Assembly: GCF_000143415.4 (NCBI RefSeq) | Contig: NW_003314270.1 | Coordinates: 1,791,048-1,855,047, forward strand | Origin: Selaginella moellendorffii | Lineage: Eukaryota > Plantae > Lycopodiophyta | Length of the DNA stretch: 64,000 bases | Reading direction: 5' to 3' | Part shown: positions 2,401-52,799 of the stretch, one piece after another | Layout of the letters: each line of letters starts with the position of its first letter | Position numbering within the stretch: position 1 is the first letter of the stretch | Notes under the pieces: model-generated | What the model saw: the letters and a program-made list of their open reading frames with translations, nothing else | Database searches by the model: none | Told to the model about the DNA's origin: nothing | Made by a program: the position numbers and the translations under genes

Positions 2401-4103
2401 CACTTGAGTATGCCATCCCCCTCAAGTGTGGCTGCCGATTGCACCACAACCAATTGTTTCAGCATCTAGCAAAGCACTCGAATCCTCCCCTTGACCTCAT
2501 CATCAGTCACCATTGGCATGTCCTACTCTTCTCCTACTGGCAATAATGTATCATCCCTTATCACCTAAAAAGGGGCAGTTTATTGTAAACCACAAAATTT
2601 TTCCTTTCCAATTTGCCAGCTTACCTTGTCTATCCAACTAACACTGCCTTGGCCTTATCTAAGTTCATTTGCCAAGGCTCCCTAAGGCGCGGACCATACT
2701 TGAGCTCACGAGTTGAAGAGTTCAGCTCACGAGTTGAGCTCAATTTTCAATTGTAATTTAGTACAAACATTATAAATTTTAAAATTTTAAGGTTATGGCA
2801 AACCTAATAATTTAATAACTCTCTATATATTATATAGATAAAAATGTTCTAAAGAACACTTTTTGTTCTAATAATTTAAATATTTACTACATGCAATGAT
2901 AGGGACATTTGCTAGAACATAAAATAAAATGTTTGCAAAAAGAGTATTCTTGTCACTTCTTTAAATTTGTACTCTATGCTTTCTGGTTAGTAAATGTTAG
3001 GTTTGTCAGAATTTAAAAATTATTAAATTTGAAATAAGATTCTATGTAAAGCCATATAACCGTTTGAAAGGAAAAAAAATAACCATTGATGTAAGCTTAT
3101 TGCATATAAAAGAAAGACTTGGTTCTTTGTAGAATACATTCTTGAGGGGTTTGTTGTAGCATACTGTCTAGAATTTATAAATCTTCATTCACACTCTCAT
3201 TCGAAAAAAGGGAAATACACCCACAAATGTCTATGGGTTCTAGTGTTGGTAATTTTAACTCTCACAATCTTTCTTCCCAGGGTTCAAGGGCTAGGAGATG
3301 CAATAACTATCCAATTGCACAGCATAATCAAATCACACAAGAGAATGAAAGAGAGGATAGTGAGGATAGTGATCATGAGTTGGAGATAAATGCAATGACA
3401 GAGGGTGCAATAAATTGGGTGAAAAAGAATGCCCTCTTACTTGTTTTAGAAAAGTGCAATTCTGCCACTTTCAAACTAAACTCCTACTTAGTTCTACTTG
3501 GTTTCAGCTACTTGTTGCACGAGCAATGGAGCATTAGCCATCCATCCACGGATTCCCAGATCTCTCCCAATCCCTCTCTCTAGGTTAGACTAGATTTAAA
3601 GTTCAATTACACTCCCCACAGGCACAAGCAGCCAAGCACACTAAGCCTCCAAGTTCCTAATATCCCTTGGTACAATAACACTTGATTATGGGACCTTCTA
3701 AATCCTAAGCCTTGGGGGCAACTCTTGCTTCGGGATGCCGAGGGGAAACACCATGGCCTAACAGCCCGATATGGGTACCTCTACTCCCCTACTTCCATCT
3801 CAAAAGGAAGGCCCAAACCTCTAGGAAGGGCAAGGACCAATAAGCCGCAAGGTACTCAAGTGGGGCACCACTCCATATGAGCTGGGAGCATCATAGTCGA
3901 TTTCCCTTCTAGGAGTGGGAGCTACTCTTGAGCACTTCCTTGGGTGGCCTCTCCGACACCACCCGAGTCCATGCTCACTCCCACCCAAGGTCCCTCGGCC
4001 CCAATCTCAATCTCAAGTCAGTTTGGAAGCACCACTGAAGAGTTCTTTCAAAATTGTTTCCTGAACCTCACTATCTCTACTATACTTTTGAAACCCCCTA
4101 CAG

Positions 4104-5560: not shown

Positions 5561-7376
5561 ACCTTGCAAATGTGCTTGCTATTTGTGCAAAGTGCTGCCT
5601 GAGGCCCAGGTTGCAACCGAATTTAAAAAAGAACCGTCATTCTGTCCACCAAAGTCTACTAAGTTGATGGTTAAGGGAGTTTGGTACAAGCAAAACTGAG
5701 ATCAAGAAAACTCAACACACACTGAGGCCAAGAATGTCTTTTTCTCTGTCTTTTAAAATTTAGCTAATATGAGCTAGCAAAAGTTGTTGTCTTCTCAAAT
5801 GCAAGGATATTGAAAAGCAGCAGTATCATCTACAAGTTTTCCAATCCAATATGTGACAAATAAATATAATATGTTCAGTATTCATGTGCAATTGAAATTA
5901 ACTGTTTATTTCTATGAAAAGCCTATGTGTCGCAAAATTCAGAAAAAAAAAACTGCAGTAATCAGCATCTCCCTCCCACCTATGCATTACAAATTAATCT
6001 TTGTATCTATTCCTATATATAGGTACTTTATATTTTTAGAATGTGCCGTCTCAATAGAAAAAGAGTGGCTTAATTTCAAACTGGTGTGGAAGCCTCTTGC
6101 TCCATTTTTTGCTCAAGATAGCAGACTCGTTGGCTTTGACAGAATATGTCAATTCCTCATTCTCCTGTGAGAAAATCCTGCTAGAGAAGCTCGTGACAAA
6201 GTTGGAGGTCTGGAAGAGTCACTGGATTCCTTGGAACCAACCCCAATGCCACCTCCAGCTGCAAGCATAAGAACCAAGGAGTCCCAGCCAAGTAGTTGGA
6301 TGACGATTGTGTTCGTGATAAAATTGGTAATGTATTAATGTTGGCTGGGTAGAGAAAAGAAGTGTTTGTTTGTTACTCCTACTGTATGTAAGAGCTAAAG
6401 GTTTTTAAAATTTTTTCTTGTTGTCTAAGGCAATAAATGTATTACTACAGGAAATTGAGTTAGAAAGGGAGGTGTAATTTCCTCAAAGTGGAGAGGTTGT
6501 TGATAAGGATAGTGGAGTGGAGTGGACAAGTCAAACCAAGGACTTGGTGAAGATATTGGCCACCATGTCTCCTGTGCCACAGTATACTATCTCAAAAATC
6601 TCATCTTCATACTTTGAATGTCGAAGTGCTCTGTGCAGAAATGTTAGCTAGGCTGCCTGCCAAAGTGATGTAGCTCTGATTGTCACACCACAGCCTCGAG
6701 GTGATTACCATTGACTTTTGGTTGTCGTGAATTCACATTTGTTGTAGTTTCTTGCGTGAACTGCATGACCTGTTGCAAGACCAAAGTAAACTGGCATTAG
6801 GGCAGAATAAATCCTGTGAACTAAAACCTTGAAATGCTGTGGTAAAACTCTTTACTGTCAAAGGCTTTTAGAAAGTGTAACTAAATAGACACGTGGGCTA
6901 AAAGAAATTGTTTTGAATCATAGTAAAAAGGACTACACAATTAGGTTGCCTCATGCATTTGTCAAGAGATAATTTTGTTTCTGTGTTTTCTAAGGGACAA
7001 TTAGAAAGTCCTAAGGGCAGCATTCAGTGTGCTTCTATTTCTTGTGGTTTGTCTATTTACTTATTTTCACTGTCTAGTGCACACTATCTAAGTTTCTATT
7101 TTCTAAAAGAGATTGTAAAATCTTCTATAGATCAATGGGTGGCAAAAGAAAGAGGAAAACATGATCTAATTTTACATGAAGACTGTATGATAAATGGAAG
7201 TTCAGCAAGTTTGAATTCATCTTGATATATGAATAAAAGCATGGATGGAAGTGTGACAAACCTGGTTTCATTTAATAATTCCAAGATTGATATCCATAGA
7301 AAATGCTTTTAGAAACACTATTGAATTTATTACCTAACCTATTTATGAAGTAAATCCTGGAAATGGAACAGAAAGC

Positions 7377-7790
7377 ATGGAAAATACTAAATATTTAGGA
7401 TTCTTGCAAAACAACAAAGATGGTAAATGTGAAGCAGATTATATTGGTCTCATGGATAAACATTGTGACTATTGTAAAGTTTTTCTTTTTGCTTCTGAAA
7501 CACAATCACAATGTTGTCATGGCGGACGTGTGTTTATAGAAAAACAAATTGAATTCCCTGAAATGATTCATAAATTATTAGACAAAACAGTCCAACGAGG
7601 AAAATATAAAGAATTAATTCGAAATTATAATAGTGCTTTGGCATTTGCATCTATGGAGGCAAATATTGATGAATGATTGGCAATGGACCATATTATTTCA
7701 AAATTCATGACAAGTATACCATTCAATTGGCAGTTTTCATCCTATGCAAGGTCATGATGCAAGATATTCTCAGCTTTATATTTTAGACAC
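7377..7790 (+). mobile_element. Helitron RepHel N-terminal fragment (pseudogenised)
   Basis: CDYC...CCHGGRV...IRNYNSALAFAS, then GNGPYYFKIH / QVYHSIGSFHPMQGHDARYSQLYILDT across a stop and a frameshift. This matches the conserved Helitron pre-Rep region. Confidence 0.8.
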
Positions 7791-9255
7791 ACTATTATAA
7801 TTTCGAATGAATTCTTTAAAATTTCCTTGTTGGAATAAATATTTGTCCTTAATTATAATTTTTTAGTTATTAGAGAAACCAATATCATGTTTATTGGTGA
7901 TCATTTTTTGTATGAATATAACATAGCAAAAGAAAATTAAAATTAAAATAATCAATCTCATCTTTTGTAATAGTACGTTTAATGTATTTTAGAACAATAG
8001 AAAAAATTAATATTTAAATAATATTTCAAGTTCAATGTAAGTACATGAACATATAACAATTACTAATTTAATTTTAAAAAATTAGTACAACTTGATGTTA
8101 TAAAAATAAAAAGGTGTAAAAACTTTATCTTCAAAGAAATTTGTAAGTGAATATTCTACATACACTTCTATTCTCTAAAAATGTTTGTGAGCATATACTA
8201 ACTTTTTAGTCTCCTAACATACTATTTTAAAAAAGTAAAATATAAAAAAATATTATATTTATAATAACATATAGTTGTGTAAATCAAAGATGTAATCATT
8301 TTAATAATATAGCTTATCAAGTAATATTTAAAATATAATAAAATATATTTATATATCTCATTTCAGCCTAGTGGCTAATTATTCTCCCTATAATATATTA
8401 TTAAAAAGTAAAGAAACAATAAATTAAATATGTAAAACAAAGTTACTCATAAAATGCATAGCTTAATTTTAAAAATGACTAAGTTAAATTTTATTCTATA
8501 ATGGAAGTATAAAAATGTACACTAAAAATTAGTTTTAATTATACTTAATCCATAGTATAGTTTTGTTGAAAGAGATAGTGTGACATATATCAAATCCAAA
8601 ATTTTATTAATCATTGTAGCTTTTTTGTTCGTACCCTTATATTTTTATTAATTATTATTACAAAATTAGTCATCTTATATATGGGAGATGGATGTACACT
8701 TAATGTTCATATAATTTATATTGTATTTCTATCAAATTGTTTTTATTATTGAGAATGAAACATTAAAAAATATTTAATGTAATTTAATAATCATATCTAG
8801 CAAACATATTATCAATAGGACTATAAAATGCTATTAATTTTGTTAGTAATATAGAAAACAACACTATAATTAATTTTAAAAAATGAGACAATATACCCAT
8901 AATAGCATCAACAACATATATAAATATCAAAATCAGTAAAAATTATCAAATGCAAATTGTAATTGTTAACACTTTTTAAGTTTTTTCATTTGTCAATGCA
9001 TGGAATATAAAAATGAAATATAGAAATAAGCCCAAAAACTCTAGTTTATATACAAAAGCAAATAGTCCGGATTGAAAGGTTATCAAAATCTCATTACGTA
9101 ATATTAGTATATAGCATCATTTGGACTTTACACATCTAAATTGGAGAAATCATTATATGAAAAATAATAAAGTATTCTATTGAACGTTAAAGGTAACAAT
9201 TTAAATATTTGTTGCCTTAACCTTTAAAATTTCCTGGAACTTGGGGTTTACCAAA

Positions 9256-19690: not shown

Positions 19691-20279
19691 ATTTTGAACC
19701 CTAAACTAGTCAATGGTCAGTCTTTAAAGACCTTTTTTGACCTCTTTTGACTAACAGGGAGTCGTTGATGGATGTTATTAGCGGCTACAAGGTTGTTTTT
19801 GGAGTCTCACCTAAGGCTATGCACTAGAGGGAAGAATACGCATTTTTTTGAGTTAAAATCCAACTGTCAACACTACTAGGAAGAACAAGGACCTCAGCTT
19901 GTCCTCTTTTGTGTAGCACCATACGTTCCTTGCAACCCCAAACATAAAAGACCAACACAAAAAATAGGTTAATTTATGAGCATATGCTCAATTGATGATA
20001 TGGCAAGGCTCTTAAACTATACGGGTTATCAGCAACAACAGCACCTAGAACTGAGGCATGGTGCATAAAAGTCCGCAATTGTTCCTGCAAGACAATTCAC
20101 GCAATAGCTGTTCTAATTACAGTTTTTTATTAAGGCAAAGATTAAATACCTTTAATCATGTGTTATTAAACTATTTTAATTTAGATCAAAATCAAACTAA
20201 GCCATATTTCCTTTTTTAGGTACAGAAACTTTAATTAAATATAAATTATTTTAATTCTTAACATAAACCTTTAGTATAT

Positions 20280-20794
20280 AATTTCCAAAGATCCAAATAC
20301 TTTACCATTTGGAGAAATTAAGAAATCTCCTATTAAAATTGTTGATGGACTTATTAATGTACTAGACTTAAGATAGCATAAAAAGAAACAAAAGAATCTC
20401 AAAGATGAATATAGAGAGCATTAATATATGGAGTTAAAAGCCTATCAAACCCCATAATTAAATTTGAACCTGATGATGTTGTTGGTGTTTTAGATGTAGA
20501 GCATTGAGGTTTAGCTTCCATAAATATTTTAACAATACCACAAGAAACACTAACTGAATCTCCATCTGAATAAGTATAAGAATAATCCTTTTCTTTATAA
20601 TTAATTTTATCAATTAGTTCCTTGATTGCACCAACCACTCTTGCCATTTCATGTGAATTTAGCACTTTAAAATTACCAAATTTTGGTTCATATTTACTAA
20701 GTGATGGTGGTGAATTTGGTGATGCACTAGAAATTTAAGTTAGTATTAATATTATAGATAAAAGAAACAATATATAAAATTTTACTTGTTCCAT
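20280..20794 (-). pseudogene. Pseudogenised paralog of the secreted N-domain + GNA-lectin gene at 37041-37880
   Basis: ATG at 20794: MEQVKFYILFLLSIILILT*ISSAS...YEPKFGNFKVLN...KDYS...VSCGIVKIFM...GFDRLL..., then LCYLKSSTLISPSTILIGDFLISPNGKV. Two in-frame stops, an internal deletion and a truncated lectin domain. Confidence 0.85.
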
Positions 20795-21313
20795 GTTCAA
20801 ATTATCAAATAGCTGAAAAACTAATGGGAATAAGGAGCAATAGAAGATTCTAAATTGCATTACCAGTAATTTTTTTTTATTATATAATTAGAGAACCCTC
20901 TTATATTGTAGTATGAGTAGTATAAAGTGAAAATGATTTATATATTTTTAATATAAGTATTTTTATATACTCAACTATTGCTATTAGTAGAATGAATACA
21001 CTGACACTAGATTACAGTTAATCAGACACTATGATTTTAAGCTACTAATAAATAAGTTATATATTCATCTTCTAGCTAAAGCGAAACTAATGAATATTTC
21101 CTTTGTGTTTACCACACTAATTTAGTATAATAATCGAGAAGAGTGGATGCTGCTGTAATTTCTTATTTTTGTCAAATTTGTAAGTTTTGTGATGGACAAA
21201 GAGAATCAAGGATTGCTGCAACGCACTGAACTATAACGAAAGCTGCATACTTGTTGTCACTAAAATCCAGCTCCCACAGTTACTATCAAAACATTATTCA
21301 AACTCCTAAACTG

Positions 21314-34133: not shown

Positions 34134-34421
34134 TCCACCGAGCCGATCCAGACGCGTTCATGCGATCAGCTGATGGAATCCTCGCTCCCGCGGCATCCTC
34201 CAACCCTAGAGCGCTCGCTTGGCGGCAAACATTAGGGCTTTTACCATTTCTTTAATAGCTTGGTTTGCTTAAGTATTCTTATTTGTTAATCCAACTGATC
34301 AAATAGAATTTATAATTATAAGTAATTTATAAACACAAGATTATATCAATTATTAAATGATAAAATAAAAAATAATATACTAGAAAGGGTTTAAGAAAGT
34401 TTATAAATTATAAATACAAGA

Positions 34422-34595
34422 TGTGAGGGCCAAGTGTACGGCTACGATGCCGTATACTAATATTAGCGTAGTGGATTTTGGTAGCCGTCGGATTGGTTTC
34501 AATCCGGACCACTCGCTCCTGTATATAAGCTAGGGTTTTTGGGCTAATTAAAAGGCACATTTCTGTATTCCCTTTCCATATTCCATGCACTCACA
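34422..34595 (+). mobile_element. Short (about 174 bp) solo-LTR-like repeat
   Basis: Bounded by TGTGAG...CTCACA, with internal TATATAA. Homologous direct copy at 38056-38226, which is followed by a PBS-like site and gag. Confidence 0.7.
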
Positions 34596-34770
34596 AAAAT
34601 AGATTTTTTTTCTTATGTTTTTTAGATTGTTATAAGTTTTGATGAATAAATGGTAGAATATTTTAGAATATTCAAATATATTAAAGTATATCCACCACAC
34701 ATTTGCTTAAGTAAACCAAAAACTTTAAAGAAAAGAGGAAGAGAGATTTCTCCATGTTTTCATCCTGCGA

Positions 34771-36222
34771 TTAGAAGCGAGCTTTGGTTTGCCAGGCCGA
34801 AATTGCACACATGATCACGTCCTTCCACCCCAGCAGGACCCAATTCTCATCCCTTCCACACCGAAAGTGCTCGCTATACTTGTATCCTCCCCACGTAGTC
34901 TTCATCCTCTCGTAATCCTCGTCCTCGACCGGGAATGGCTTGAATCCAGCGCGCTTGGCCCTCACGTCCCAGGTCTTGTACTTCTCCGGCCGCTCCACTT
35001 GATCCAACCCATCGCACGCCACCACGTTCATGATCACCTTCTGGAACGTCTTCTCCATCAAGCTCCGCTGCTCCAGATCGTCGCTCAACCACGCGTCCAT
35101 GGACTCCATCTTCGCCGTGTAATACTCGAGCGCCGCCTCGAACTTTGGGAGGAAGAACGGCGAGCTCATGGACGAGTTCCCCACGGTCATCACCACCAGC
35201 TTGGGGCTCATCTTGCTGATCCTCTCGAACAGAAGCTTGCGAGGATTGTTAATGGCGACCCACTCGTCCTTCATGTTTTGCAGCCTGCCGTTGGAGTTGA
35301 CGACCAGGAACTCGTTCGAGTGCGTCACCGGCTGGACCGTCTCCCAGGAGTTGGACTGGATCGAGCAGAACTCGAGCTGGACACCGTGTGATCTCGCGTA
35401 CTCGGTCAGGCGCTGCCCCGCTTGTGTCGCCTCGGGAACCATTGGCAGATCGATCCCGGTGATCTTGAGATGTGGAGGACCTTCCGGACGGACGCTCAAA
35501 GCCTTGATTAACGACGGCCACTGGTGACCGCAGAAGATCCCATAGTCGACGATGTGGACTCTCCTCGCTCCAGCGCAAGCTCGGAGAATCACATCGTTGG
35601 CGAAGGTGTGGATCCTCGAGGAAGGGAGGCACGCGATCCGGCTGCCCGAGAGAATCCTCCTGGTGGTCATTCCAGCCACCAGAGCCCTGTATGTCTGCGG
35701 CCCTGTTCCTGTCACCCGGGCTACCAGCGCTTCGATGAAGAACATCGCAAGCCTCTCTAGCGGAGTCGACTGTGACCAGACCACTTGCCTGAGATCGCTT
35801 GCCAGGGCGTAGAAAGCCGCGAAGTCCTTGGCTGCTACGGCTCGAGCACACTCCATCAAGCACCACTGTATATCTACAGTCGGAGAATTTGGGGACTCGT
35901 CGATCACGCCACTGACGAAACCTGCGTCGCTGGGTGAGCCTGGTGAGTCGCTCTCCCTGGAACTCTCCCTGCTCGAGGAAGAAGGGGAAACGATTGCCGT
36001 GAGCTCGTCCAGCAGACCTTGGTAAGATCTCTGCGGAGGAAGAGATTCAACCTCGTCGTCTTCGTCCATGAGCATTCTGGACAGATAGGAGAGCGTTGGA
36101 TCGTTGGAATCAGGCGACCATTGCTGCTCCGTGTAGAAACTAGCCGCTGGCTCGAGCTTTACCTCGTGTTGCTGGAGAACCCTTCTCAGCTTGGTTACCA
36201 AATCCTCCCCCAGATTTCCCAT
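34771..36222 (-). CDS. GRAS transcription factor, LISCL/SCL14-like, uninterrupted CDS (copy 1)
   Basis: TLSYLSRMLMDED, LMECARAVA, ERLA, VHIVDYG, QWPSLI, PPHLKITGID, PFF.PKF, NVVACDG..ERPE, GWK, SAW. Confidence 0.92.
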   Translation of the reverse strand: MGNLGEDLVTKLRRVLQQHEVKLEPAASFYTEQQWSPDSNDPTLSYLSRMLMDEDDEVESLPPQRSYQGLLDELTAIVSPSSSSRESSRESDSPGSPSDAGFVSGVIDESPNSPTVDIQWCLMECARAVAAKDFAAFYALASDLRQVVWSQSTPLERLAMFFIEALVARVTGTGPQTYRALVAGMTTRRILSGSRIACLPSSRIHTFANDVILRACAGARRVHIVDYGIFCGHQWPSLIKALSVRPEGPPHLKITGIDLPMVPEATQAGQRLTEYARSHGVQLEFCSIQSNSWETVQPVTHSNEFLVVNSNGRLQNMKDEWVAINNPRKLLFERISKMSPKLVVMTVGNSSMSSPFFLPKFEAALEYYTAKMESMDAWLSDDLEQRSLMEKTFQKVIMNVVACDGLDQVERPEKYKTWDVRAKRAGFKPFPVEDEDYERMKTTWGGYKYSEHFRCGRDENWVLLGWKDVIMCAISAWQTKARF

Positions 36223-37040
36223 CCGCGCCAGAAACCCTGCAAAGACAGACTCTTGTGATCCAAGTCTAACGCACGTGGTGGAAACAGCCTTGATCGACGT
36301 GGTAGCTGAGGTGGACAAAAATAGCCACGTGGCAGATTCTAGGAATCTTCAAAATCAAGGAGACAGCAAAAGTTAAATGGGAAATTAAAATTTGGATAGA
36401 AACTGTGCCAGAAACATGGCACAAGGTATCATTATTGAGCTTGGAGGATAACAAGAGGGATGGGAGGTTAGGCTAGACTTTTTTTTATTTCCACCTTTAA
36501 AAAGAAGAGAGTGTTCTTTGTGAGGAATTTACTTTGGATTGTGATTCTAGGACCACTATACAGTTAATATCAAAGATTCCCAGCCCAACTTAAAAACTGT
36601 GGCAATTTCTCCATCCCAAGCATGAAGCTGTTAAAGGATGTCTCCAACAAGTTAAAGTAATCTGGATATAAAGAAGCTCACTACCCTCTGTTTAATATGG
36701 TCTCAGATGTTCTAATATTTAAAACCTTATCTATGACTTTTCCTGGTCTAAATCAGGTTCTTAATCATGGGTTAAAAACCTTGTAACAATTGCTTCTATT
36801 TATCTTGACATAATTTATCTATAGATAAAATATTCAAGCAGCATAGCAAGTTTTATTAAATATTTCAAACATATACAATATAAAAGGTTTAGAGATTTAT
36901 TTTATTCGATTGTTTATAGAAGAACAATTTACAGATCTTTAGAATTTTTATTATATATTATATATTCTATATATTTTTAGTCTTTTGGTGATATCAATAT
37001 AAATTAAATTCTTTATATGTGATACAAATACCTTTAACAT

Positions 37041-37880
37041 TTAACATAAATATGGAGGGTTTAGTTTCCAAAACTCTTTACCTTCAAACATTGCAGAATA
37101 TATTTTTATATTACAGCTATTTTGAACAGTAAGATAAAATATATCTAACTCTAAACATTTCAATTCTGGAAAACAATACTTATTAGAATCCCAAATAGCT
37201 TTGTAATTGTTGTATAGAACTAGATTACCATCATTTTGTAATTTTAATTTACAATATATAATATTACTTTGTGATGTTTCTGAATTCCAAATTTTATCCT
37301 TAAGATAATAAAGAACTAAAACACAATTTGATTCTAAAATCAAAATAACTTTACCGTTTGAAGAAGTTAGAAAATCACCAATATAAATTATTGATGGACT
37401 AATTACTGTACTAGATTTAAGTTGGCATAAATAAGTATGGTATGAAATTTTAGTTTTCTCAAACAACTCTTCTTTTGGTTCTAATTTATATTGTATAAAG
37501 TAATTAGGATTTTCATTTTCAAAGGATTCACAAAGATTAATTTTAAGTGTACTGATAAATGGATTTATAAGTCTTTCAAAGCCTTGAATTAAGTTTGTAC
37601 CCTTTGTAGTGCCTTGTGTGTCAGATGTAGAGCAATCATCTTTTGATTTCATAATAATTTTAACAATTCCACATGAAACACGAATAGATTTTCCACTTGA
37701 AAATAACTTAGAATAATCTTTTTTTTTATAATCTATTTTTCCTATTAGTCTATTGATGATACGAATTACTTTATCCATATCCTGTGGATTTAATACGTTA
37801 AATTTTCCAAATTTTGGAGAGTATGCAATAGCACTTTGAATTAATAATACAAGTACAAATATTAAAGATACTAACTTCAT
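37041..37880 (-). CDS. Secreted protein: unrecognised N-terminal domain plus GNA/bulb-type (B-) lectin domain, intronless, AT-rich
   Basis: 279-aa ORF with ATG and signal peptide MKLVSLIFVLVLLIQSAIA. B-lectin pattern GDFLTSSNG..LILESNCVLVLY...IWNS...LKLQNDGNLVLY...IWDS...LTVQNSCNIKIY...FW. Paralog at 20.3-20.8 kb. Confidence 0.8.
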   Translation of the reverse strand: MKLVSLIFVLVLLIQSAIAYSPKFGKFNVLNPQDMDKVIRIINRLIGKIDYKKKDYSKLFSSGKSIRVSCGIVKIIMKSKDDCSTSDTQGTTKGTNLIQGFERLINPFISTLKINLCESFENENPNYFIQYKLEPKEELFEKTKISYHTYLCQLKSSTVISPSIIYIGDFLTSSNGKVILILESNCVLVLYYLKDKIWNSETSQSNIIYCKLKLQNDGNLVLYNNYKAIWDSNKYCFPELKCLELDIFYLTVQNSCNIKIYSAMFEGKEFWKLNPPYLC

Positions 37881-38055
37881 TTCATTTAGATAAGATTCAA
37901 ATTTTAAAAAACTTAATTCATATATAATATATAGCCAAATTAAATTTAAATTTAAATAAATAATATTTATAATTAATATAAACTTTGTAAAGCCACTTGC
38001 TTATACTTCAGCCTACCTAGGTATAAACAATAAAGCATCAATAAAGCATGTAACA

Positions 38056-38875
38056 TGTGGACATATATAGCTACAATGCCGTATATTAATATTAGCATAG
38101 TGGGATTTTGATAGCCGTCGAATTAGTTTCAATTCGGACCACTCGATTTTGTATATAAGTTATAATTTTTGGGCTAATTGATATACACATTTTTTATATT
38201 TCCTTTCCAAATTCCATGCACTCACATTAGTAGAAGTGAGGAGCACCTTTAACTCACATTGGTGGAAGTGAGAGGCACCTTTAATTATCCTTCAGGAATG
38301 CTTGGATTTGGGATTTTGGTTTAGATCTAACTTTTATACTGTCTAAATCTCTCTTTCTTTCTAGCTTTTTTTATTTCTTTTCTTTTGCTTTTTCTTTTTC
38401 ATTCATCTTCATGGCAAAGTAATAGTCTCTTCCTCTTTTAACTTTGACTTGATGCTATGTGATTGCAATTGAATAACCAAACTCAATTGATAGTAGTATT
38501 CATGACATATGGTATAGCTTTTCCTACTTTTGGTGCTAGTCCTCACGTTCGGCTAGAGTTATTTCGTAGGAATCCTGAGGATGATGTGTACTATTGGCTC
38601 GATCATTTCACAGTGATTGCTATATATCATTCTTAGGATGATACTTGATGTTTGCATGAATTTCCCATGTGTCTCTAAGGGACAACACTGAAGTGGTACA
38701 ATGGTTTGAGGGTAGCCACTCATGGGGATTAGAATATTCTTCTAAATGTCTTCAAATGTGCATTCAAACATGTTGATGATTTTGATAATGCCTCTTAACA
38801 ATTGCATCATCTTCATCAAGGGCCATCAGAGCCAGTGATGCAATTTGACATTCATTTTCGAAGTTTCTTACTTCG
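38056..38875 (+). mobile_element. LTR retrotransposon 5' end: LTR, duplicated PBS-like site and degenerate gag
   Basis: LTR 38056-38226 ends CTCACA; 32-bp tandem duplication containing TGGTGGAAGTGAG; gag-like EDDVYYWLDHF...FPMCL*GTTLKWYNGL...QLHHLHQGPSEPVMQFDIHF with stops. Confidence 0.72.
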
Positions 38876-39161
38876 TGCATGTAACTCACATGAATTTAAA
38901 GCTAAACTCCAACCCCATTGTACTACAAAACAAGGGTCCAATAAAATCCTATGAGCACCAGCTCTCTATATCTCGCACTTGCACACTAAATGGTATTAAA
39001 TGGTGTTTGGCACAATTTTGGTATATCAGTGGCTTAACGTAAGAAAGAAGGTACCCCATCGACTAGAGTGCCGGTGCGACGTTGAGGATTTTGGCTCATG
39101 CTTTGCTTTTTGCTCGAAAGTTCTAAGTTTTGGTCGTGGTTTGCTCACATTGTCCTTTCAG

Positions 39162-39584
39162 CATTGGATTCGAACGAATGGCGGAAGTTTTGACTCTTAG
39201 AAGCAAAGCCTATGACTCACAACACGAGATGTTACAGGCAAGAGGAAAGAAAAAGTGGAAAACAAGACGATGTGCTAATGTTCTTTATATAATTTTGTTG
39301 TCCAGGTTTGCCTTGGATGACGATGCACAACTGGGTCTTAACGTTGCTTCGTGCCTCTTGACAAAGTAACGGAGCTGCTAAACTTTATGACGAAGATCCG
39401 TGAATTTTTCTTTGCTTTGCAAGGCTGCCATGGGTAAGAAAAAGGATGGGAAGCCAAATGCGATCATCAGACCGTATGTAAAATTGTTTTACGCTTGGAA
39501 TCACTGTAACTCGTGCTTCGTGCTGACAAATATACGCCCATAAGTGATCTAGATGTTCATGGTCACTTCGATTTACTTGTGAAG
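39162..39584 (+). pseudogene. NADH-cytochrome b5 reductase (CBR2-like) internal gene fragment, 4 exons
   Basis: LDSNEWRKF*LLEAKPMTHNTRCYR|FALDDDAQLGLNVASCLLTK|AAMGKKKDGKPNAIIRP|YTPISDLDVHGHFDLLVK. TGA at 39191, GC donor at 39238, one acceptor reads AA instead of AG. Confidence 0.82.
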
Positions 39585-40559
39585 GTATTGTGTTCTTTGC
39601 TTGGGCTTACCCAAGTTGGGTGCAAAACAAGGAGTGATATAACCTAGCAAAAGCTAAACTAATGTTTTAGGTGGTCAGACATACATTTCAATCACTATCC
39701 CTATTATATATTTGAAACCCCCTATAACCCCCCTTAAGAACATACACTTTGGGCTTTCCCCCCAAGCCTCCTTTAGTACTAGTCTCTGGGATAAGTTTGA
39801 AATTTACAAAATATAGAATGTTCTTAGATTGCGAATTTAGACATGGGATGAACACCATTATGTTCAAAACAATCTCTACATTCCATAGATATGCAAAATG
39901 AGTAAAATTTAAACACTTTTCACAAATAACATTTGGGACCAGAATGAGACTGATAGCAAGGGTGTTTGGTATGCATGGTAAGTTATCATGTAGCAATATT
40001 AAGGGACTAGACTCAATATGCGAGGGTTCTTGCTAAGCCAATACAAAACAGAGTAAAAAAGAATTAATAAACTGAGCCAAATATGCTTAGCTAAATAAAC
40101 ATTTAGGAATTCCTTTTTTTTGCTCATCCAGCTAAGTACAAATGCTAAATCCAGTTTACTAACACTTGGACAAGAGGGGTTAATAAAGAAAATTAGCAAT
40201 ACTGACTTATTATTGTCATAGCAGTAAGAAAAGAGTGTTTATAAAGACTGACCAACAAGTATCTTTCAATACCTAAAGTCATATTTGCAACACTCTGCCC
40301 CCCTTATTAAAGATTGATATCCTTTCTCTTCTTGGAATAGGACGCCACAATCCTCGCCTCCAAGGTAAGAGAAGAGTTCTAACATAGAAAATAAAAAGCA
40401 ATTTTTTTTAAGATTTCTTTGCTAGGATCCTTAAGATTAACCCATGCTCAATCCCTTGCCATCGTATGGGCAAGGAAGGCTGATCAATTTCATTTGTAGA
40501 TGCCCAGAAGTAGCACCGGAAGAGGGTGTAATTTTGAGTCGCAATGAAAGGCGAGGCAA

Positions 40560-40914
40560 CCCATATGTATGGATTTCAGTATATTGTCGAACCAGCTAGC
40601 ACTGGAAAGTCCACCATGCCACTATGAGATACCTTTCTCAAGAAGGCCACCACATGATTTTCCTTGATGCTCAAAGGCCCTGCAAGAATCTAGAAGCAAC
40701 TTTGTTATAGAGCCTTCCGCAAGAATTCCTTGCTATGGCTAACCTTTCAATGATTTTTGAATGTATGGCCTTTCTGATGCGTTTGATAGTAAGAGCTACG
40801 ATTGTAGTGGACGGTGGCAATGTGATTTCAACAAAGAGTGGTGCTACTACTTTGCTAGATGGCCTTGTGAATGTTTACAATGTAGTATTTTGTGCTTCGC
40901 TCTTCAATGAATAA
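40560..40914 (+). pseudogene. Second degenerate P-loop NTPase fragment (Crinkler-type NTPase-like)
   Basis: YIVEPASTGKST (GPAGTGKST after two G>A changes), then after a frameshift HMIFLDA...ATIVVDGGN...NVVFCASLFN, with an internal stop. Confidence 0.55.
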
Positions 40915-42190
40915 AATGAAGTGATCCATAATCCCAAAAACTCATTTTATTGAGTTGATAGATTATGCATGTCTTTAGTGAGATCAAAATCCAAAACTGG
41001 CAGAGATTTAAATTCTGTTTAATGGGTTAGAATATTTTTTATGTGATTAACTTTATTTTTAATACTTTATGAATAAAATAATCAAATTTACCTAAACATA
41101 TTCTTTTCTATAAATTATTATAATCTTTGAATATTTTAGGTTAAAATTAACTTTTATAATTTACTTTTAACAGTATTTACAAATATAATACAAAAATTAT
41201 ATTTTGTACAAATGGCCTGTCTAAATATCACTAAAATATATAAAATTCAACACCAGATGATTGTATATTAAATGTGGGTTGACTCAGTTTTATGAATGTG
41301 TAAGACCATGATTAAAACTTCAAATGTTAATAAAAAAACATTACACAACTTTAACAATAAGAGTACATATTATATTTTTATATATAGCCTTAGCTATTTA
41401 CAATCTAGCTTATTATCAGAAAAAGCTACAATAATATATGTAGTAGTTGATTAAACAGCGATATTTTTAAATCTTTTTACTAACTGCAAATATAGTTTAT
41501 TAGTACATAATACTATGGAATATAAAATTTAAATTTATAGTTTTAATATCATATATATTTACAAATAATTATTTTCTTGTTTGGAGCTGGGTAGTAATAT
41601 ATTAATGCTCCTAAAAACTTATTGTTTTATTTTCTAAGTAAAACGTATAATTAATTAATATGTTGTAGTAATTAAGTCTCTTTTGTTTGATAAAATCATA
41701 ATAAGTCTATCCCAAGTAAAAATATAATTTACATATAACATATTATTGATAATAGAAACTTATTTTTACTTTTTTCTTTGTCAGGTTTTTTTTAAAATAT
41801 ATTCATATTTCCAAATAATAATTTGTATATAATATCTTTATTAATGAATATTTATTCCTACTTATGCCTAGAAATATATTTCGTTCTGAATATTTTTATT
41901 ACCAAGTTTACAAAAATTAATTTTTCTATTCATTTAGCATTTTCTAGGCATAATTCCCTCAATCAAAGTGGAATACAATATTTGTTATTTTAATACTATT
42001 CCAATTTGGTTTTTAATAAGCAAAAGCCCTAAAATATTTATAGGGGTATCGTATATTATAAAATCAAAACAATATTTTATTAATTACATGTTGGGCAAGT
42101 GCTAGATATATATAAACAAGATTACATCAATCAATATAAAATCATTAAAGAGAATCAGCATGCAATACAAATACTTACACAGTCAAAATT

Positions 42191-43618
42191 TTATAAGACT
42201 TGAGCTTTAGTCTCCCAAGCAGACATTCCACACAAGATTACATCCTTCCACCCAAGCAACATCCAGTTCTCATCCTTTCCACACCCAAAGTTTTTGTTGC
42301 AAGCATAACCTCCCCACTGTGATTTCATCCTCTCATACACCTCTTCACCTACTAGAAACGGTTGAAATCCAGCTCTTTTTGCTCGCGAGTCCCAGGTCCT
42401 GTATTTGTCTGGCCTCTCCAGTTGCTCCAGGCCATCGCAAGCCACAACGCTCGTGATTGCCCTCTGGAACACCTTCTCTACTAAATCGCGATCACCAATC
42501 GAATCCCAGCCCAGCCATGCGTCGAGGCATTCCATTTTTGCGGTGAAATGCTTCAGCGTCTCGTCAAACTTGGGAATGAAGAACGGCGAGCTAAACGAAG
42601 CGTTTGACACGCACATCACGAAGACTTTGGGCCTCATCTTGTAGATACTCTCGAACAAAAGCCTGCGAGGATTGTTGACGGAAATCCACTCGTCTCTCAT
42701 ATGCTGAAGGCTCATGTTGGAGTTGACGACCAGAAGTTCGTTGGCAAGAGTTACCGGCTGAACAGATTCCCAGGAATTCGACTGGATCGAGCAGTACTCG
42801 AGCTGTACCCCGTTGCTCCTAGCAAAGGCTGCCAAACGTTGCCCGGCCACAAAGGCCTCGGGCACAGTGACAAGATCGATGCCTGTGATCTTGAGCTGTG
42901 GAGGACCTTCCGGACGTACTGAAAAAGCCTTGATCAAGGAAGGCCACTGGCGACCGCAATGAACCCCATAGTCGATGATATGAACTTTGTTGGCTCCTGC
43001 GCAAGCACGCAATATGACATCGTTGGCAAAGTTGACTACTATTGCGAACAGCGGCAGCCTCGCATCTGCCACTAGCATTCTTGAACTAATTCCAGCCGAA
43101 ATCGCCCTGTAAGCTTGAGGCCCTGTCCCTGCTAATCTGGCCGCAAGCGCATCAATGAGAAAACGAGCTACCTTCTGCAAAGGAGTTGATTGCAATGCAA
43201 CTGCATCCCTGATGTCTCTTGCCAGATCATAGAAGCCTGCAACATTGTTTGCAGCTACAGCTCTCGCACACTCCATCAAACTACTGTGAATGTCTGTAGT
43301 CCTCCCCAAATTTACCTCAAAGCCGGATGATTGATCACTACCCTCTGTCGAGCTATCACTGCTTTCACTAGGAGAAACAATTGCCGAGAGCTCGTCGAAC
43401 AAACCTTGAAAGGAAGGCTTTTGTTGCTGCGCCGAGTCAGCTTCTCCTTCCCCTTCGTCTTCCAGCAGCATCTTGGACAGATAGGCCAGAGTATCTCTCG
43501 AATCATGCAAAGCATCGCGCTTGGAGTAGCCGATCTTAGCAGCTGGCTCGAGCTCTACCTGATTCCTGTAGAGAACTCTCCTGAGCTGCGAGACTAGATC
43601 CTCGCCCGCCGCCTCCAT
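42191..43618 (-). CDS. GRAS transcription factor, LISCL/SCL14-like (copy 2)
   Basis: TLAYLSKMLLED, LMECARAVA, VHIIDYG, QWPSLI, SSPFFIPKF, VVACDG..ERPD, SAW; collinear with copy 1. Confidence 0.92.
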   Translation of the reverse strand: MEAAGEDLVSQLRRVLYRNQVELEPAAKIGYSKRDALHDSRDTLAYLSKMLLEDEGEGEADSAQQQKPSFQGLFDELSAIVSPSESSDSSTEGSDQSSGFEVNLGRTTDIHSSLMECARAVAANNVAGFYDLARDIRDAVALQSTPLQKVARFLIDALAARLAGTGPQAYRAISAGISSRMLVADARLPLFAIVVNFANDVILRACAGANKVHIIDYGVHCGRQWPSLIKAFSVRPEGPPQLKITGIDLVTVPEAFVAGQRLAAFARSNGVQLEYCSIQSNSWESVQPVTLANELLVVNSNMSLQHMRDEWISVNNPRRLLFESIYKMRPKVFVMCVSNASFSSPFFIPKFDETLKHFTAKMECLDAWLGWDSIGDRDLVEKVFQRAITSVVACDGLEQLERPDKYRTWDSRAKRAGFQPFLVGEEVYERMKSQWGGYACNKNFGCGKDENWMLLGWKDVILCGMSAWETKAQVL

Positions 43619-44152
43619 GTCGCCGCCAAGAGACCTGAAGTAAAAAACCATAGAACTTGTGAAGCAAAGCCACAGATTAAACACTAAGAGAACACGTGAG
43701 AGAGTGGAACACTAGAAAACAACAAAAGTGGTTACCGACACTTCACCAAAAACTTTCCCAGACAACAGCTGGAAGAGACCTCCAGCAAAACCTTAGCTTG
43801 GAATATAAACAAAGGAAGAACAACAAGAACCACAGAAGAAGCCGTGACGAGGAACAATGATCCCCTAAAAAACAAGATCGAAGCCAGATATGATCGCGCG
43901 CACTGAACGGGGACCCAGCGCTTCGCGGAGCGTAGGAGCGCAGCTCGACAGTCGACAAACCCTAGAGCTTGAAAATATTTCCCCCAATTTGCTACGACCT
44001 AGAAGCAAAGCCGTTCTTCCTGTACCAAAGTGGGGTCTTAGGCTAGATTCCTGGGTGGATTTTCGCAGAAATTCCACTGCCAAAAAGAGCTCTCTTTCCT
44101 CTCACCTCCATTTAGTTCTTCCCTCCCCAAGGACGCACAAAGAAAGGCCCCA

Positions 44153-50775: not shown

Positions 50776-52799
50776 AAGCATTGGTGTTATTAGTTTTGTG
50801 AATCCAAGCCAAGAGCATTAAAGAAAGCTATGACGAAGACAATGAAAGTAGCAGTGTAGAAATCCAACTCTCAGGTGAGGGGAAGAACCTCAAAGCTCTC
50901 TCACCGGAGGCATCACAATTCAGCGAGCTACAACAACGAAATCCCAGTTATTTTTTTCTCCTTTACTTATAAGGTTTAGAGCTAACTAGATTTCAAAGCT
51001 GATCTTGGATCATATAAAACCTCTCCAAGGATCCGAAGCTCACTTGGTTTGCAAGTTTCTCGTTGCTATTTTGTAGACTTTCCTTGTTCTTTTCATTTGG
51101 TGATTTAGTCTTTGCACAGCTCGCTCATCCAGTGCAGGGATGCTGCCATGCTGATCCATTTGTCAAACAAGGAGCAAGAGATGAAGGCAAGTCTCTCTTC
51201 AATGTTTTATTCTTCAGTTACAAACGTGCTGGCACTTCAGACTCTCGTCCACAATTTGAAGCTTTCTTTGAGGCCTCCAACGCATCAGGTGCTCAAGCAT
51301 TCTCCAGTCTAGCTAGATCTTACAACTTCCATACATGCAGAATGTACACGTACAAAGGTTAGTGTGTTTCATTCAATGGTAACACTATCTCAAGTTGTGA
51401 CTTCCAAAGTCTAGAATTGCAGAAAAGAAGGTGAAGGACCCGATCTTGCTGCTATCCAGTTCACTCTGCACAGTGAAATGGCAATATAGACAAAGTGTTG
51501 TATGGATGAAGAGAAAGGAGGGTTTCTTTCTTTCCCGTATAGGACTTCTTTAGTCATGTCTTACAAGGTTTTGATACATGCCCAGGCTGATAAGATTGCC
51601 TTCTGATTTCAGAACCAATAGAAAATTCTTGTTAATAACGTGAACATTATCTTTGATTTAAAGTGGTACTTTGATCTACTCTTATGGAGTTTTCTTAAGA
51701 AATTATACACTAAACATGAAAGGTTTTGTGTTAATTTTGCTTTTTTCTATCTTGGTTGATTGTTTCAAGTTTTAATTTGATCAACAAGCAAAACTTTTGT
51801 GATGATTTAATTTAAAATTGAAAGCATCATTACATTTAATTTTCTTGAATTCATTCCTCCACAATATCATTATTTCATCCTTTCACTTTTGTTTTTTAGC
51901 TTGAAAATCTTATTCAAACTTAAAAGAAAAATCAATTTCCCAATCTATTGCCTCTAGCTCCTCCTCCTAAGAATCCTTTTTAAGCACAAGATCCTCATTG
52001 TCCATATTCTGGATGATTTAATTCATTTCCTCCTCATCAACTTGAATTTCTGTTGAGCCTTCTTTGTGTTCTGATTGCTCTGAAACTCCTTAAACATGAA
52101 ATTTAGCATCTCCTTGTCATCCATGTCCTTGAGATTTGATGGTAAAATTTCAATCATCTCTTGGTCACTTATTGGACTTTCTGCCACATTAGGGAACACA
52201 ATAAGGGTGTGTTCCTCCTTATTTACAACTTTATTCTCCTCAAGCAATGCCATGATTCTATCCATCTCCATGTTATCAATGTCAAAATCTTCCATGTCCT
52301 CCAAGCTTTATTAGTCTATTAACCATAACCACTCTGACTATCATTGGTTGGCAAACTTGTACTTTTCAACTTGGAACTTCTTGTTCTAATATGCTATGTC
52401 AACTTCTTGAGTGCTTCATGTAGGTGGGCTTTGTTTTTCCACCATAGGTGAATTTTTTCTTCCACTGACTGCAATGGTACTTTGGCTAGCTAATGTTATC
52501 ATTGTTGAAATAGTTGAAATTAGTTGAGTGCTGCTTTTTTAAGTATATTTTCAACTCACTCTATTAGAAAGATGAATACTCAAACAGTGCGTAATTCTGG
52601 AGAAGATGGAACTCCTTTTACACCTTGCTGCTCTTTGCTACTTCTCTATTGAAAGTACAATTGAAACCTAAAATATTTCCTTTTTTACAAGCTTTAAGGG
52701 ATGAAATGGGGTTGAATGTGTTTGAAGTTTTGGTAAAGGGAGTTTTATTAAACATCTTTCAATTCCCACCTTTATATCTGTAGAGAGTGGAGAGAGCGA

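Follow-up and report, generated by a model that had tools for sequence, protein, structure and literature searches.

The closest described relatives of the protein studied here are plant lectins of the GNA family. Gastrodianin (GAFP-1), a monomeric mannose-binding antifungal lectin of Gastrodia elata (1xd5/1xd6), is the closest relative with a solved structure, and the two have the beta-prism II fold in common. As regards the genomic setting, the nearest known case comes from the AT-rich, repeat-rich effector compartments of some fungal plant pathogens, e.g., the AT isochores of Leptosphaeria maculans. A survey of plant GNA-family chimerolectins found that fusions between GNA and other domains vary by lineage, e.g., GH+GNA in bryophytes (PMC6362431). 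In Selaginella moellendorffii, Maumus et al. (PMC4083422) described unannotated families acquired by horizontal transfer, and lectins are not among them.

Here, we analysed an open reading frame (ORF) encoded in a stretch of 64 kb of S. moellendorffii DNA (hereafter the window). Its product is predicted to join a GNA-type lectin to an N-terminal domain in which we could detect no relatives. Our analyses taken together make it probable, at roughly 0.6, that positions 37041-37880 are a genuine, lineage-restricted nuclear gene of S. moellendorffii missed by annotation, which would code for a functional secreted glycan-binding protein with a probable role in defence. The kind of protein is already known, i.e., a GNA chimerolectin; what is new is the comparison between alleles, the dead paralogue in the window and the depletion in CpG. 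In the literature, we found no paper describing this lectin-fusion family or its N-terminal partner domain.

An intact reading frame between two GRAS genes

The ORF is flanked by a tandem pair of GRAS genes (GRAS1 and GRAS2) and has the following features:

37041-37880 (stop codon included), minus strand: intact single-exon ORF from the ORF listing, 279 aa, ATG start, TAA stop, predicted fusion of an orphan domain and a GNA lectin
37824-37880, minus strand: putative signal peptide, residues 1-19, MKLVSLIFVLVLLIQSAIA, read from the sequence
37416-37823, minus strand: orphan N-domain and linker, residues 20-155, 4 Cys, pI 9.3, no relatives detected
37044-37415, minus strand: predicted GNA-type (B-lectin, beta-prism II) domain, residues 156-279, 6 Cys, from phmmer on the PDB and an AF2 model
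37212-37238, minus strand: sole complete QxDxNxVxY mannose-site motif, QNDGNLVLY, residues 215-223, from the alignment
37964-37971, minus strand: possible TATA box, TATAAATA, 84-91 nt upstream of the ATG
36852-36857, minus strand: possible polyadenylation signal, AATAAA, 184-189 nt past the stop codon

The intact 279-aa frame was the starting point of the original prediction, and we recovered it exactly, from ATG to TAA. The identical ORF is present in scaffold GL377574.1 of assembly GCA_000143415.2, to which the window belongs and where the neighbouring GRAS protein is matched residue for residue. No gene was called at this place of GL377574.1 in the v1.0 annotation, and the 279-aa product is missing from the collection of called genes. 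Frames of this length are not expected by chance. Given the composition of the AT-rich block that holds the ORF, the probability of a stop is 0.094 per codon (one expected every 10-11 codons), and the probability that 279 codons stay open is ~1e-12. The longest open run in the block has 319 codons, while none of 2000 shuffles exceeded 136, which bears out the earlier remark that a long frame is kept open in AT-rich DNA.

The signal peptide proposed before also fits what can be read from the sequence. MKLVSLIFVLVLLIQSAIA, which precedes YSP, has an n/h/c layout with K2, a hydrophobic core of 12 residues and AIA followed by Y20, thereby placing A at positions -3 and -1 of the cleavage point. The predicted mature protein has 260 aa, about 30 kDa, a pI of 8.8 and 10 Cys; it carries no N-glycosylation sequon. 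Strings such as TATAAATA are common in DNA of 23% GC.

A predicted lectin domain with one canonical mannose site

Residues 156-279 match gastrodianin/GAFP-1 (1xd5, E 9e-10) and GNA (E 5e-8) in a phmmer search of the PDB. The Pfam family B_lectin (PF01453) matches with 20.7-22.5 bits (E 2e-4 to 6e-4), under its gathering score of 32.4. Word searches, both for the full-length protein and for residues 150-279 alone, matched bacterial tandem B-lectins only. We built an AF2 model on an alignment of 17 rows, including bacterial B-lectin repeats; this rescued only the lectin half of the protein, where the block means of pLDDT are about 69-91 over residues 156-279.

In this model, residues 156-279 form the three four-stranded subdomains of the beta-prism II fold. 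Its comparison with gastrodianin (1xd5) gives a Z of 17.9, with an rmsd of 1.4 A over 110/110 residues at 34% identity (VIA), and that with GNA (1msa) a Z of 14.7 (VIA). Thirty-one lectin entries have Z >12 (12.8-17.6 for the 30 other than 1xd5), and the next rows, which are unrelated, have Z <4 (VIA). The lectin of UmbA4, from the umbrella toxin particles of Streptomyces, is among these structural matches (Z 16). As judged from the model and the sequence matches, we assign residues 156-279 to the GNA-type beta-prism II lectins, with one canonical predicted mannose site, in line with the original prediction on both the domain and the number of its sites.

Only the middle subdomain has a complete mannose motif (one of three), QNDGNLVLY. 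The first motif is degenerate (ESNCVLVLY at residue 183, pattern ExNxVxVxY), as is the third (QNSCNIKIY at residue 253, pattern QxSxNxKxY). With two of the three sites degenerate, the domain may bind sugars weakly or differently, or may have lost this ability. Degenerate sugar sites also occur in many accepted members of the GNA family. In the phmmer alignment, C186 and C210 align with the two Cys of gastrodianin, and correspond to the conserved intradomain disulfide of the family (Cys29-Cys52 in GNA numbering). This lectin is peculiar in having an insertion of some 8 residues, as well as 4 extra Cys, between and after subdomains 2 and 3.

An N-terminal domain without detectable relatives

The region between the putative signal peptide and the lectin had been described as a Cys-containing domain of about 100 aa. 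It does contain Cys, but it is larger (about 136 aa, residues 20-155) and has only four of them, at positions 70, 83, 117 and 152. When 1.84 billion representative proteins were searched with an HMMER profile of residues 20-155, none matched at E<=1e-3. Neither residues 20-156 nor the homologous piece of the paralogue described below match any Pfam family at E<=10. A profile search of the PDB with the N-domain gave noise only (E >0.2), and the ESM Atlas gave no usable match. Scans confirmed with tblastn revealed no relatives in viral contigs, 185,579 prokaryotic genomes or JGI metagenomes. A known plant lectin-associated domain, which the original prediction had named as evidence against it, was thus found neither in Pfam, the PDB nor the 1.84 billion proteins, and its description of an intronless secreted protein in which a domain without known relatives precedes a GNA lectin is supported.

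Two candidates were discarded. The matches to DUF7756 (E 0.08-0.11) and DUF2661 are sub-threshold and extend over the linker or the signal region. The idea that the domain is a second, decayed lectin repeat receives an hhalign probability of 0.2% against the B-lectin alignment. The AF2 models of the N-domain have pLDDT of 25-40 in both runs (the single-sequence run has a mean of 35), and these two low-confidence runs share, in rough outline only, two helices (near residues 32-47 and 95-105) and a hairpin near 109-135. From its sequence, the N-domain is a domain without detectable relatives and a candidate for a new fold or function.

It had been suggested that the N-domain resembles the KP4 killer toxin of the Ustilago maydis virus P4 and its kin, in which case the protein would be a toxin targeted by its lectin. 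KP4 has an alpha/beta-sandwich fold with five disulfides and carries 10 Cys. The protein studied here is, like KP4 and KP4-like proteins, small and secreted (by prediction), it is basic (pI 8.8) and has cysteines, its secondary structure is mixed alpha/beta (in low-confidence predictions only), and architectures joining a lectin to an effector are known, e.g., the above-mentioned UmbA4. Yet, the profile of the KP4 family (PF09044) matches neither residues 20-156 nor the paralogue piece, the PDB gives no sequence match, four Cys in 136 residues are unlike the content of KP4, and the pLDDT of the N-domain model is too low for a comparison of folds. With neither sequence nor profile similarity, the likeness to KP4 finds no support and we regard such a fold as highly improbable.

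Two haplotypes, a dead paralogue and probable selection on the intact copy

The window has a counterpart in another scaffold of the same species. The 90% cluster of the neighbouring GRAS protein includes its allele, EFJ34329.1 / XP_002963996.1, encoded in S. moellendorffii GL377569.1. Along 9.2 kb that comprise GRAS2, an AT island, the block of the ORF and GRAS1, this scaffold is collinear with the window, of which it represents the second haplotype in the v1.0 assembly. Moreover, contigs of DNA runs labelled S. moellendorffii carry the ORF at about 99% identity. Because two collinear haplotype scaffolds and the DNA-run contigs hold the ORF, misassembly is excluded, and so is the contamination that the original prediction had considered for the AT-rich block.

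The allele in GL377569.1 is intact and codes for 284 aa. The alleles differ by five substitutions, of which three are synonymous and two non-synonymous (H148Y and I259V), and by one in-frame insertion of 15 bp (PPKAK) that directly follows the signal peptide. All 10 Cys and the intact mannose-site motif are kept in both alleles. The allelic omega is 0.16, which with only five substitutions is not significant by itself (binomial p 0.056 for <=2/5 non-synonymous). Mismatches between the two haplotypes are distributed as follows:

ORF: 0.6% (5/840)
AT-rich flanks, 3' and 5': 1.5% and 3.2%
36223-36700: 2.3%
GRAS1 coding sequence: 0.8%

The ORF has fewer mismatches than the AT flanks (5/840 versus 11/525, Fisher p 0.018) and than the wider flanks (5/840 versus 22/1003, Fisher p 0.005). 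Allelic divergence is about 2% in the non-coding flanks, three to four times as much as in the ORF. Each of these tests, like the comparison with the paralogue below, is small on its own, and together they provide moderate evidence of purifying selection on the intact copy.

The search for further copies with tblastn, also advised in the original prediction, uncovered a second one in the window, which has decayed:

20283-20800, minus strand: decayed paralogue (pseudogene), tblastn 55% and 71% identity, E 2.5e-32

This paralogue has a stop in the region of the signal peptide and another in place of the codon of Cys117. A deletion accompanied by a frameshift has removed residues 121-149, and the sequence is no longer recognisable past residue 183, i.e., the lectin domain was lost. 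The remaining piece of the N-domain is 55-56% identical to that of the intact copy and keeps three of the four Cys. The comparison involves two copies, both in the 64-kb window, whose similarity in DNA is confined to the coding part. Their dS is about 0.6 and pN is lower than pS (p 0.001 over both pieces), with an omega versus the pseudogene of 0.53 in the N-domain and 0.32 in the start of the lectin. A dN/dS near 1, combined with a lack of expression, had been named beforehand as evidence against the original prediction, and both values are below 1. Since one paralogue in the window is dead, members of this family do decay.

The ORF could itself be a relic, recently inactivated or never functional, which is open but neither expressed nor under selection now. 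In favour of such a relic, the ORF lacks annotation and sits in repeat-like, CpG-depleted DNA beside a high-copy repeat, with a dead paralogue nearby and two of three sugar sites degenerate; furthermore, none of the runs whose contigs hold the ORF is on record as RNA. However, an unconstrained frame closes quickly at 0.094 stops per codon and this one is open in both haplotypes. The sole indel in the ORF is in frame, its divergence is a fraction of that of its flanks, and the 10 Cys and the intact site were retained in both alleles. We find the relic an improbable account, and favour a gene that is maintained by selection.

Some sequencing data would be compatible with expression. The contigs of three small runs of 2020, whose library type is unrecorded, cover only 36809-37953, i.e., the ORF with 73 nt upstream and 232 nt downstream, and include no adjacent unique DNA. 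One of these runs carries the allele with the 15-bp insertion. The high-copy repeat is ~10-fold deeper than the ORF in the three runs, versus ~700-fold in the DNA runs. This pattern of coverage, together with TATAAATA and AATAAA, would fit an mRNA. We take this coverage as no more than a lead to a possible expression of the gene.

AT-rich, CpG-depleted islands and the origin of the gene

The composition of the ORF is very different from that of the neighbouring genes. It has 24.8% GC and a GC3 of 14%, versus 57% and 74% in the adjacent GRAS gene, which agrees with the contrast noted in the original prediction, and GC3 is 55-77% in four neighbouring genes. The residues FYMINK make up 42% of the 279-aa protein versus 21% of GRAS1. 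The ORF is part of a larger block:

36701-38065, no strand: AT-rich, CpG-depleted block holding the gene, 23% GC, CpG observed/expected (o/e) 0.27

On the 5' side of the gene, a high-copy repeat begins directly next to this block, at about 38066. Windowed GC drops to <30% in eight blocks of at least 400 bp of the window, and the rest of its 64 kb has 40-58% GC. The block of the pseudogene is also AT-rich (26.5% GC, CpG o/e 0.20). CpG o/e is 0.20-0.35 in all four AT islands measured, versus 0.85-0.93 in bulk DNA and GRAS1, and these islands lack the TpA depletion found in the rest of the window. Within the window, the AT islands other than that of the pseudogene have no similarity to the ORF, and only pieces of a short high-copy repeat match between islands. 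In the literature, we found no paper on AT-rich, CpG-poor islands in Selaginella.

AT islands unrelated to the ORF are just as AT-rich and as depleted in CpG, so that we most simply attribute the composition to the genomic compartment and a local mutational regime, rather than to a recent transfer. The equally AT-rich paralogue, at a dS of about 0.6, suggests that the family has long resided under the local AT bias. Deamination of methylated cytosines in repeat-like chromatin is the probable cause of both the AT-richness and the depletion in CpG, and the islands would escape the process that enriches ordinary genes in GC. The AT-richness would then reflect a long-standing local regime and a foreign donor would not be needed. 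CpG depletion could also have come with an AT-rich, CpG-poor donor.

The original prediction suggested a foreign or mobile origin. Under this hypothesis, the family came by horizontal transfer, the donor being AT-rich (an amoeba, a fungus, a giant virus or another endogenised element), or was the cargo of a mobile element, and the AT block of 1.3-1.4 kb is the imported unit. The low GC3 and the amino-acid usage unlike that of neighbouring genes would fit such an origin, as would an intronless gene with compact AT-rich flanks and the occurrence of two or more copies within AT blocks of the window. It also has a precedent, since S. moellendorffii is reported to hold horizontally acquired, partly unannotated gene families (PMC4083422). 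Against it, plant GRAS genes flank the locus, in the same order, in both haplotypes, and no convincing terminal inverted or direct repeats, nor target duplications, bound the gene block. The two copies are similar at the DNA level only in their coding part. The N-domain has no donor-like relatives in viral contigs, prokaryotic genomes, metagenomes or 1.84e9 proteins, and the best match of the lectin among solved structures, by structure and by sequence, is a plant lectin. Finally, islands unrelated to the ORF share its composition and CpG depletion, and the paralogue has not drifted to the composition of the host. We thus regard a foreign or mobile origin as unlikely, and prefer that of a resident gene shaped by the compartment that holds it.

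Discussion

If the gene is functional, its product would enter the secretory pathway and act in the apoplast or the cell wall, or possibly in the vacuole. The lectin domain may dock the protein on mannose-type glycans of microbes, of herbivores or of the plant's own wall. This docking would be monovalent, so that specificity is probably narrow or of low avidity. The orphan domain could supply a second activity, be it as an effector, in oligomerisation or in the binding of a second ligand. Gastrodianin and other GNA-family chimerolectins provide the analogy from which we propose that the protein has a role in defence.

The results suggest that the genome of a model lycophyte still hides intact, apparently constrained protein-coding genes. 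The gene was missed because a GC3 of 14%, in a neighbourhood of 55-77%, defeats gene finders trained on GC-rich genes. As it is unannotated, surveys of annotated proteins could not see this lectin fusion, and their reliance on annotated proteomes means that plant lectin surveys undercount the family. The islands, with 20-25% GC and a depletion in CpG, adjoin normal genes, and some of them carry genes that are apparently live, which raises the question of the interplay of mutation, methylation and selection in lycophyte genomes. The orphan N-domain is attached to a well-understood targeting module, which makes it a candidate for a new fold or function.

One could go much further and imagine a hidden family of secreted proteins in Selaginella, each made of an effector of orphan fold and a single-site GNA lectin, residing in a dedicated repeat compartment, AT-rich and depleted in CpG, that would be the plant counterpart of the fast-evolving effector compartments of filamentous pathogens. 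The N-domain would then be a new fold with a new activity delivered by the lectin, antimicrobial or otherwise, and the family might go back to an ancient transfer, with an AT-rich donor that has yet to be sampled. We consider this scenario quite unlikely, and retain the more modest one of a resident gene that annotation missed.

How does the protein compare with known systems? With gastrodianin and GNA (1msa), it has in common two aligned Cys, one QxDxNxVxY site and secretion (here predicted). It differs from them in that the lectin makes up the C-terminal half of the protein, behind an orphan domain of 136 residues, in that degenerate motifs occupy two of its three sugar sites, and in having ~8 extra residues, 4 extra Cys and a sub-threshold B_lectin score. 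It resembles the plant GNA chimerolectins (PMC6362431) in joining a GNA domain to an unrelated domain in an early-diverging land plant, whereas its partner domain is in no Pfam or InterPro family. The lectin-like bacteriocins LlpA and pyocin L1 are also secreted two-domain proteins of about 250-280 aa with a B-lectin (E 1e-6, Z 14.5), but they are bacterial and their second domain is another B-lectin, which the N-domain studied here is not (hhalign probability 0.2%).

The genomic setting is best compared with the AT-isochore compartments of fungi. To our knowledge, RIP is not known in plants. Both settings include small secreted Cys-containing proteins with very low GC3, encoded in AT-rich, repeat-like blocks between genes of normal GC, but the host is here a plant and the signature is one of CpG depletion.

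AT-rich islands of the window

The AT-rich DNA around the lectin gene is one of eight blocks in the window, defined by a windowed GC below 30% for at least 400 bp, that are interspersed with genes of normal GC and have a GC of 22-32%.

AT-rich blocks
451-1401
2701-3201
7151-9251
20051-21201, holds the decayed paralogue of the lectin gene
34201-34801
36701-38501, holds the lectin gene
40901-42251
51601-52001

CpG is strongly depleted in all four of the eight blocks that were measured (observed/expected 0.20-0.35 vs 0.85-0.93 elsewhere), and these four do not share the TpA depletion that marks the remainder of the window. Among the window's other AT-rich blocks, only that of the pseudogene shows similarity to the lectin ORF.

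High-copy repeat (depth about 700 times single-copy in DNA runs)
38066-38500, directly upstream of the CpG-depleted block around the lectin ORF
34441-34603, further piece
8989-9118, further piece

The upstream repeat contains a 32-nt tandem duplication (38220-38283), and contig ends or jumps are numerous at 38066, 38335, 38448 and 38491. At 38601-39717, mismatches to the other haplotype (L002, on GL377569.1) rise to about 8%, compared with 1-3% in neighbouring non-coding DNA; possible causes are the alignment of a repeat to one of its non-allelic copies and a long-standing divergence between the haplotypes.

7377-7676 (+), 99-aa ORF at the edge of the 7151-9251 island

This ORF has a Cys-rich motif (C..C ... 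CC..G) and presumably resembles the N-terminus of a Helitron Rep/helicase; a Pfam search gave no match at E<=1e-3.

Differences between haplotypes in coding sequences

L002:8389-8403 (window ~37824), 15-bp insertion in the lectin-ORF allele
34771-36222 (-), GRAS1; other-haplotype copy L002:10001-11452
42191-43621, GRAS2, tandem paralogue of GRAS1

The insertion encodes PPKAK directly after the predicted signal-peptide cleavage site and places Pro at its +1 position, where this residue usually disfavours cleavage. In the dead paralogue this position is occupied by a longer spacer rich in S and P, so the shorter form, found in the window, may be derived. The two GRAS paralogues share about 70% nucleotide identity. 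Between its haplotype copies, GRAS1 shows 10 non-synonymous and only 2 synonymous differences, and the resulting omega of about 1.5 is atypical for a conserved transcription-factor family.
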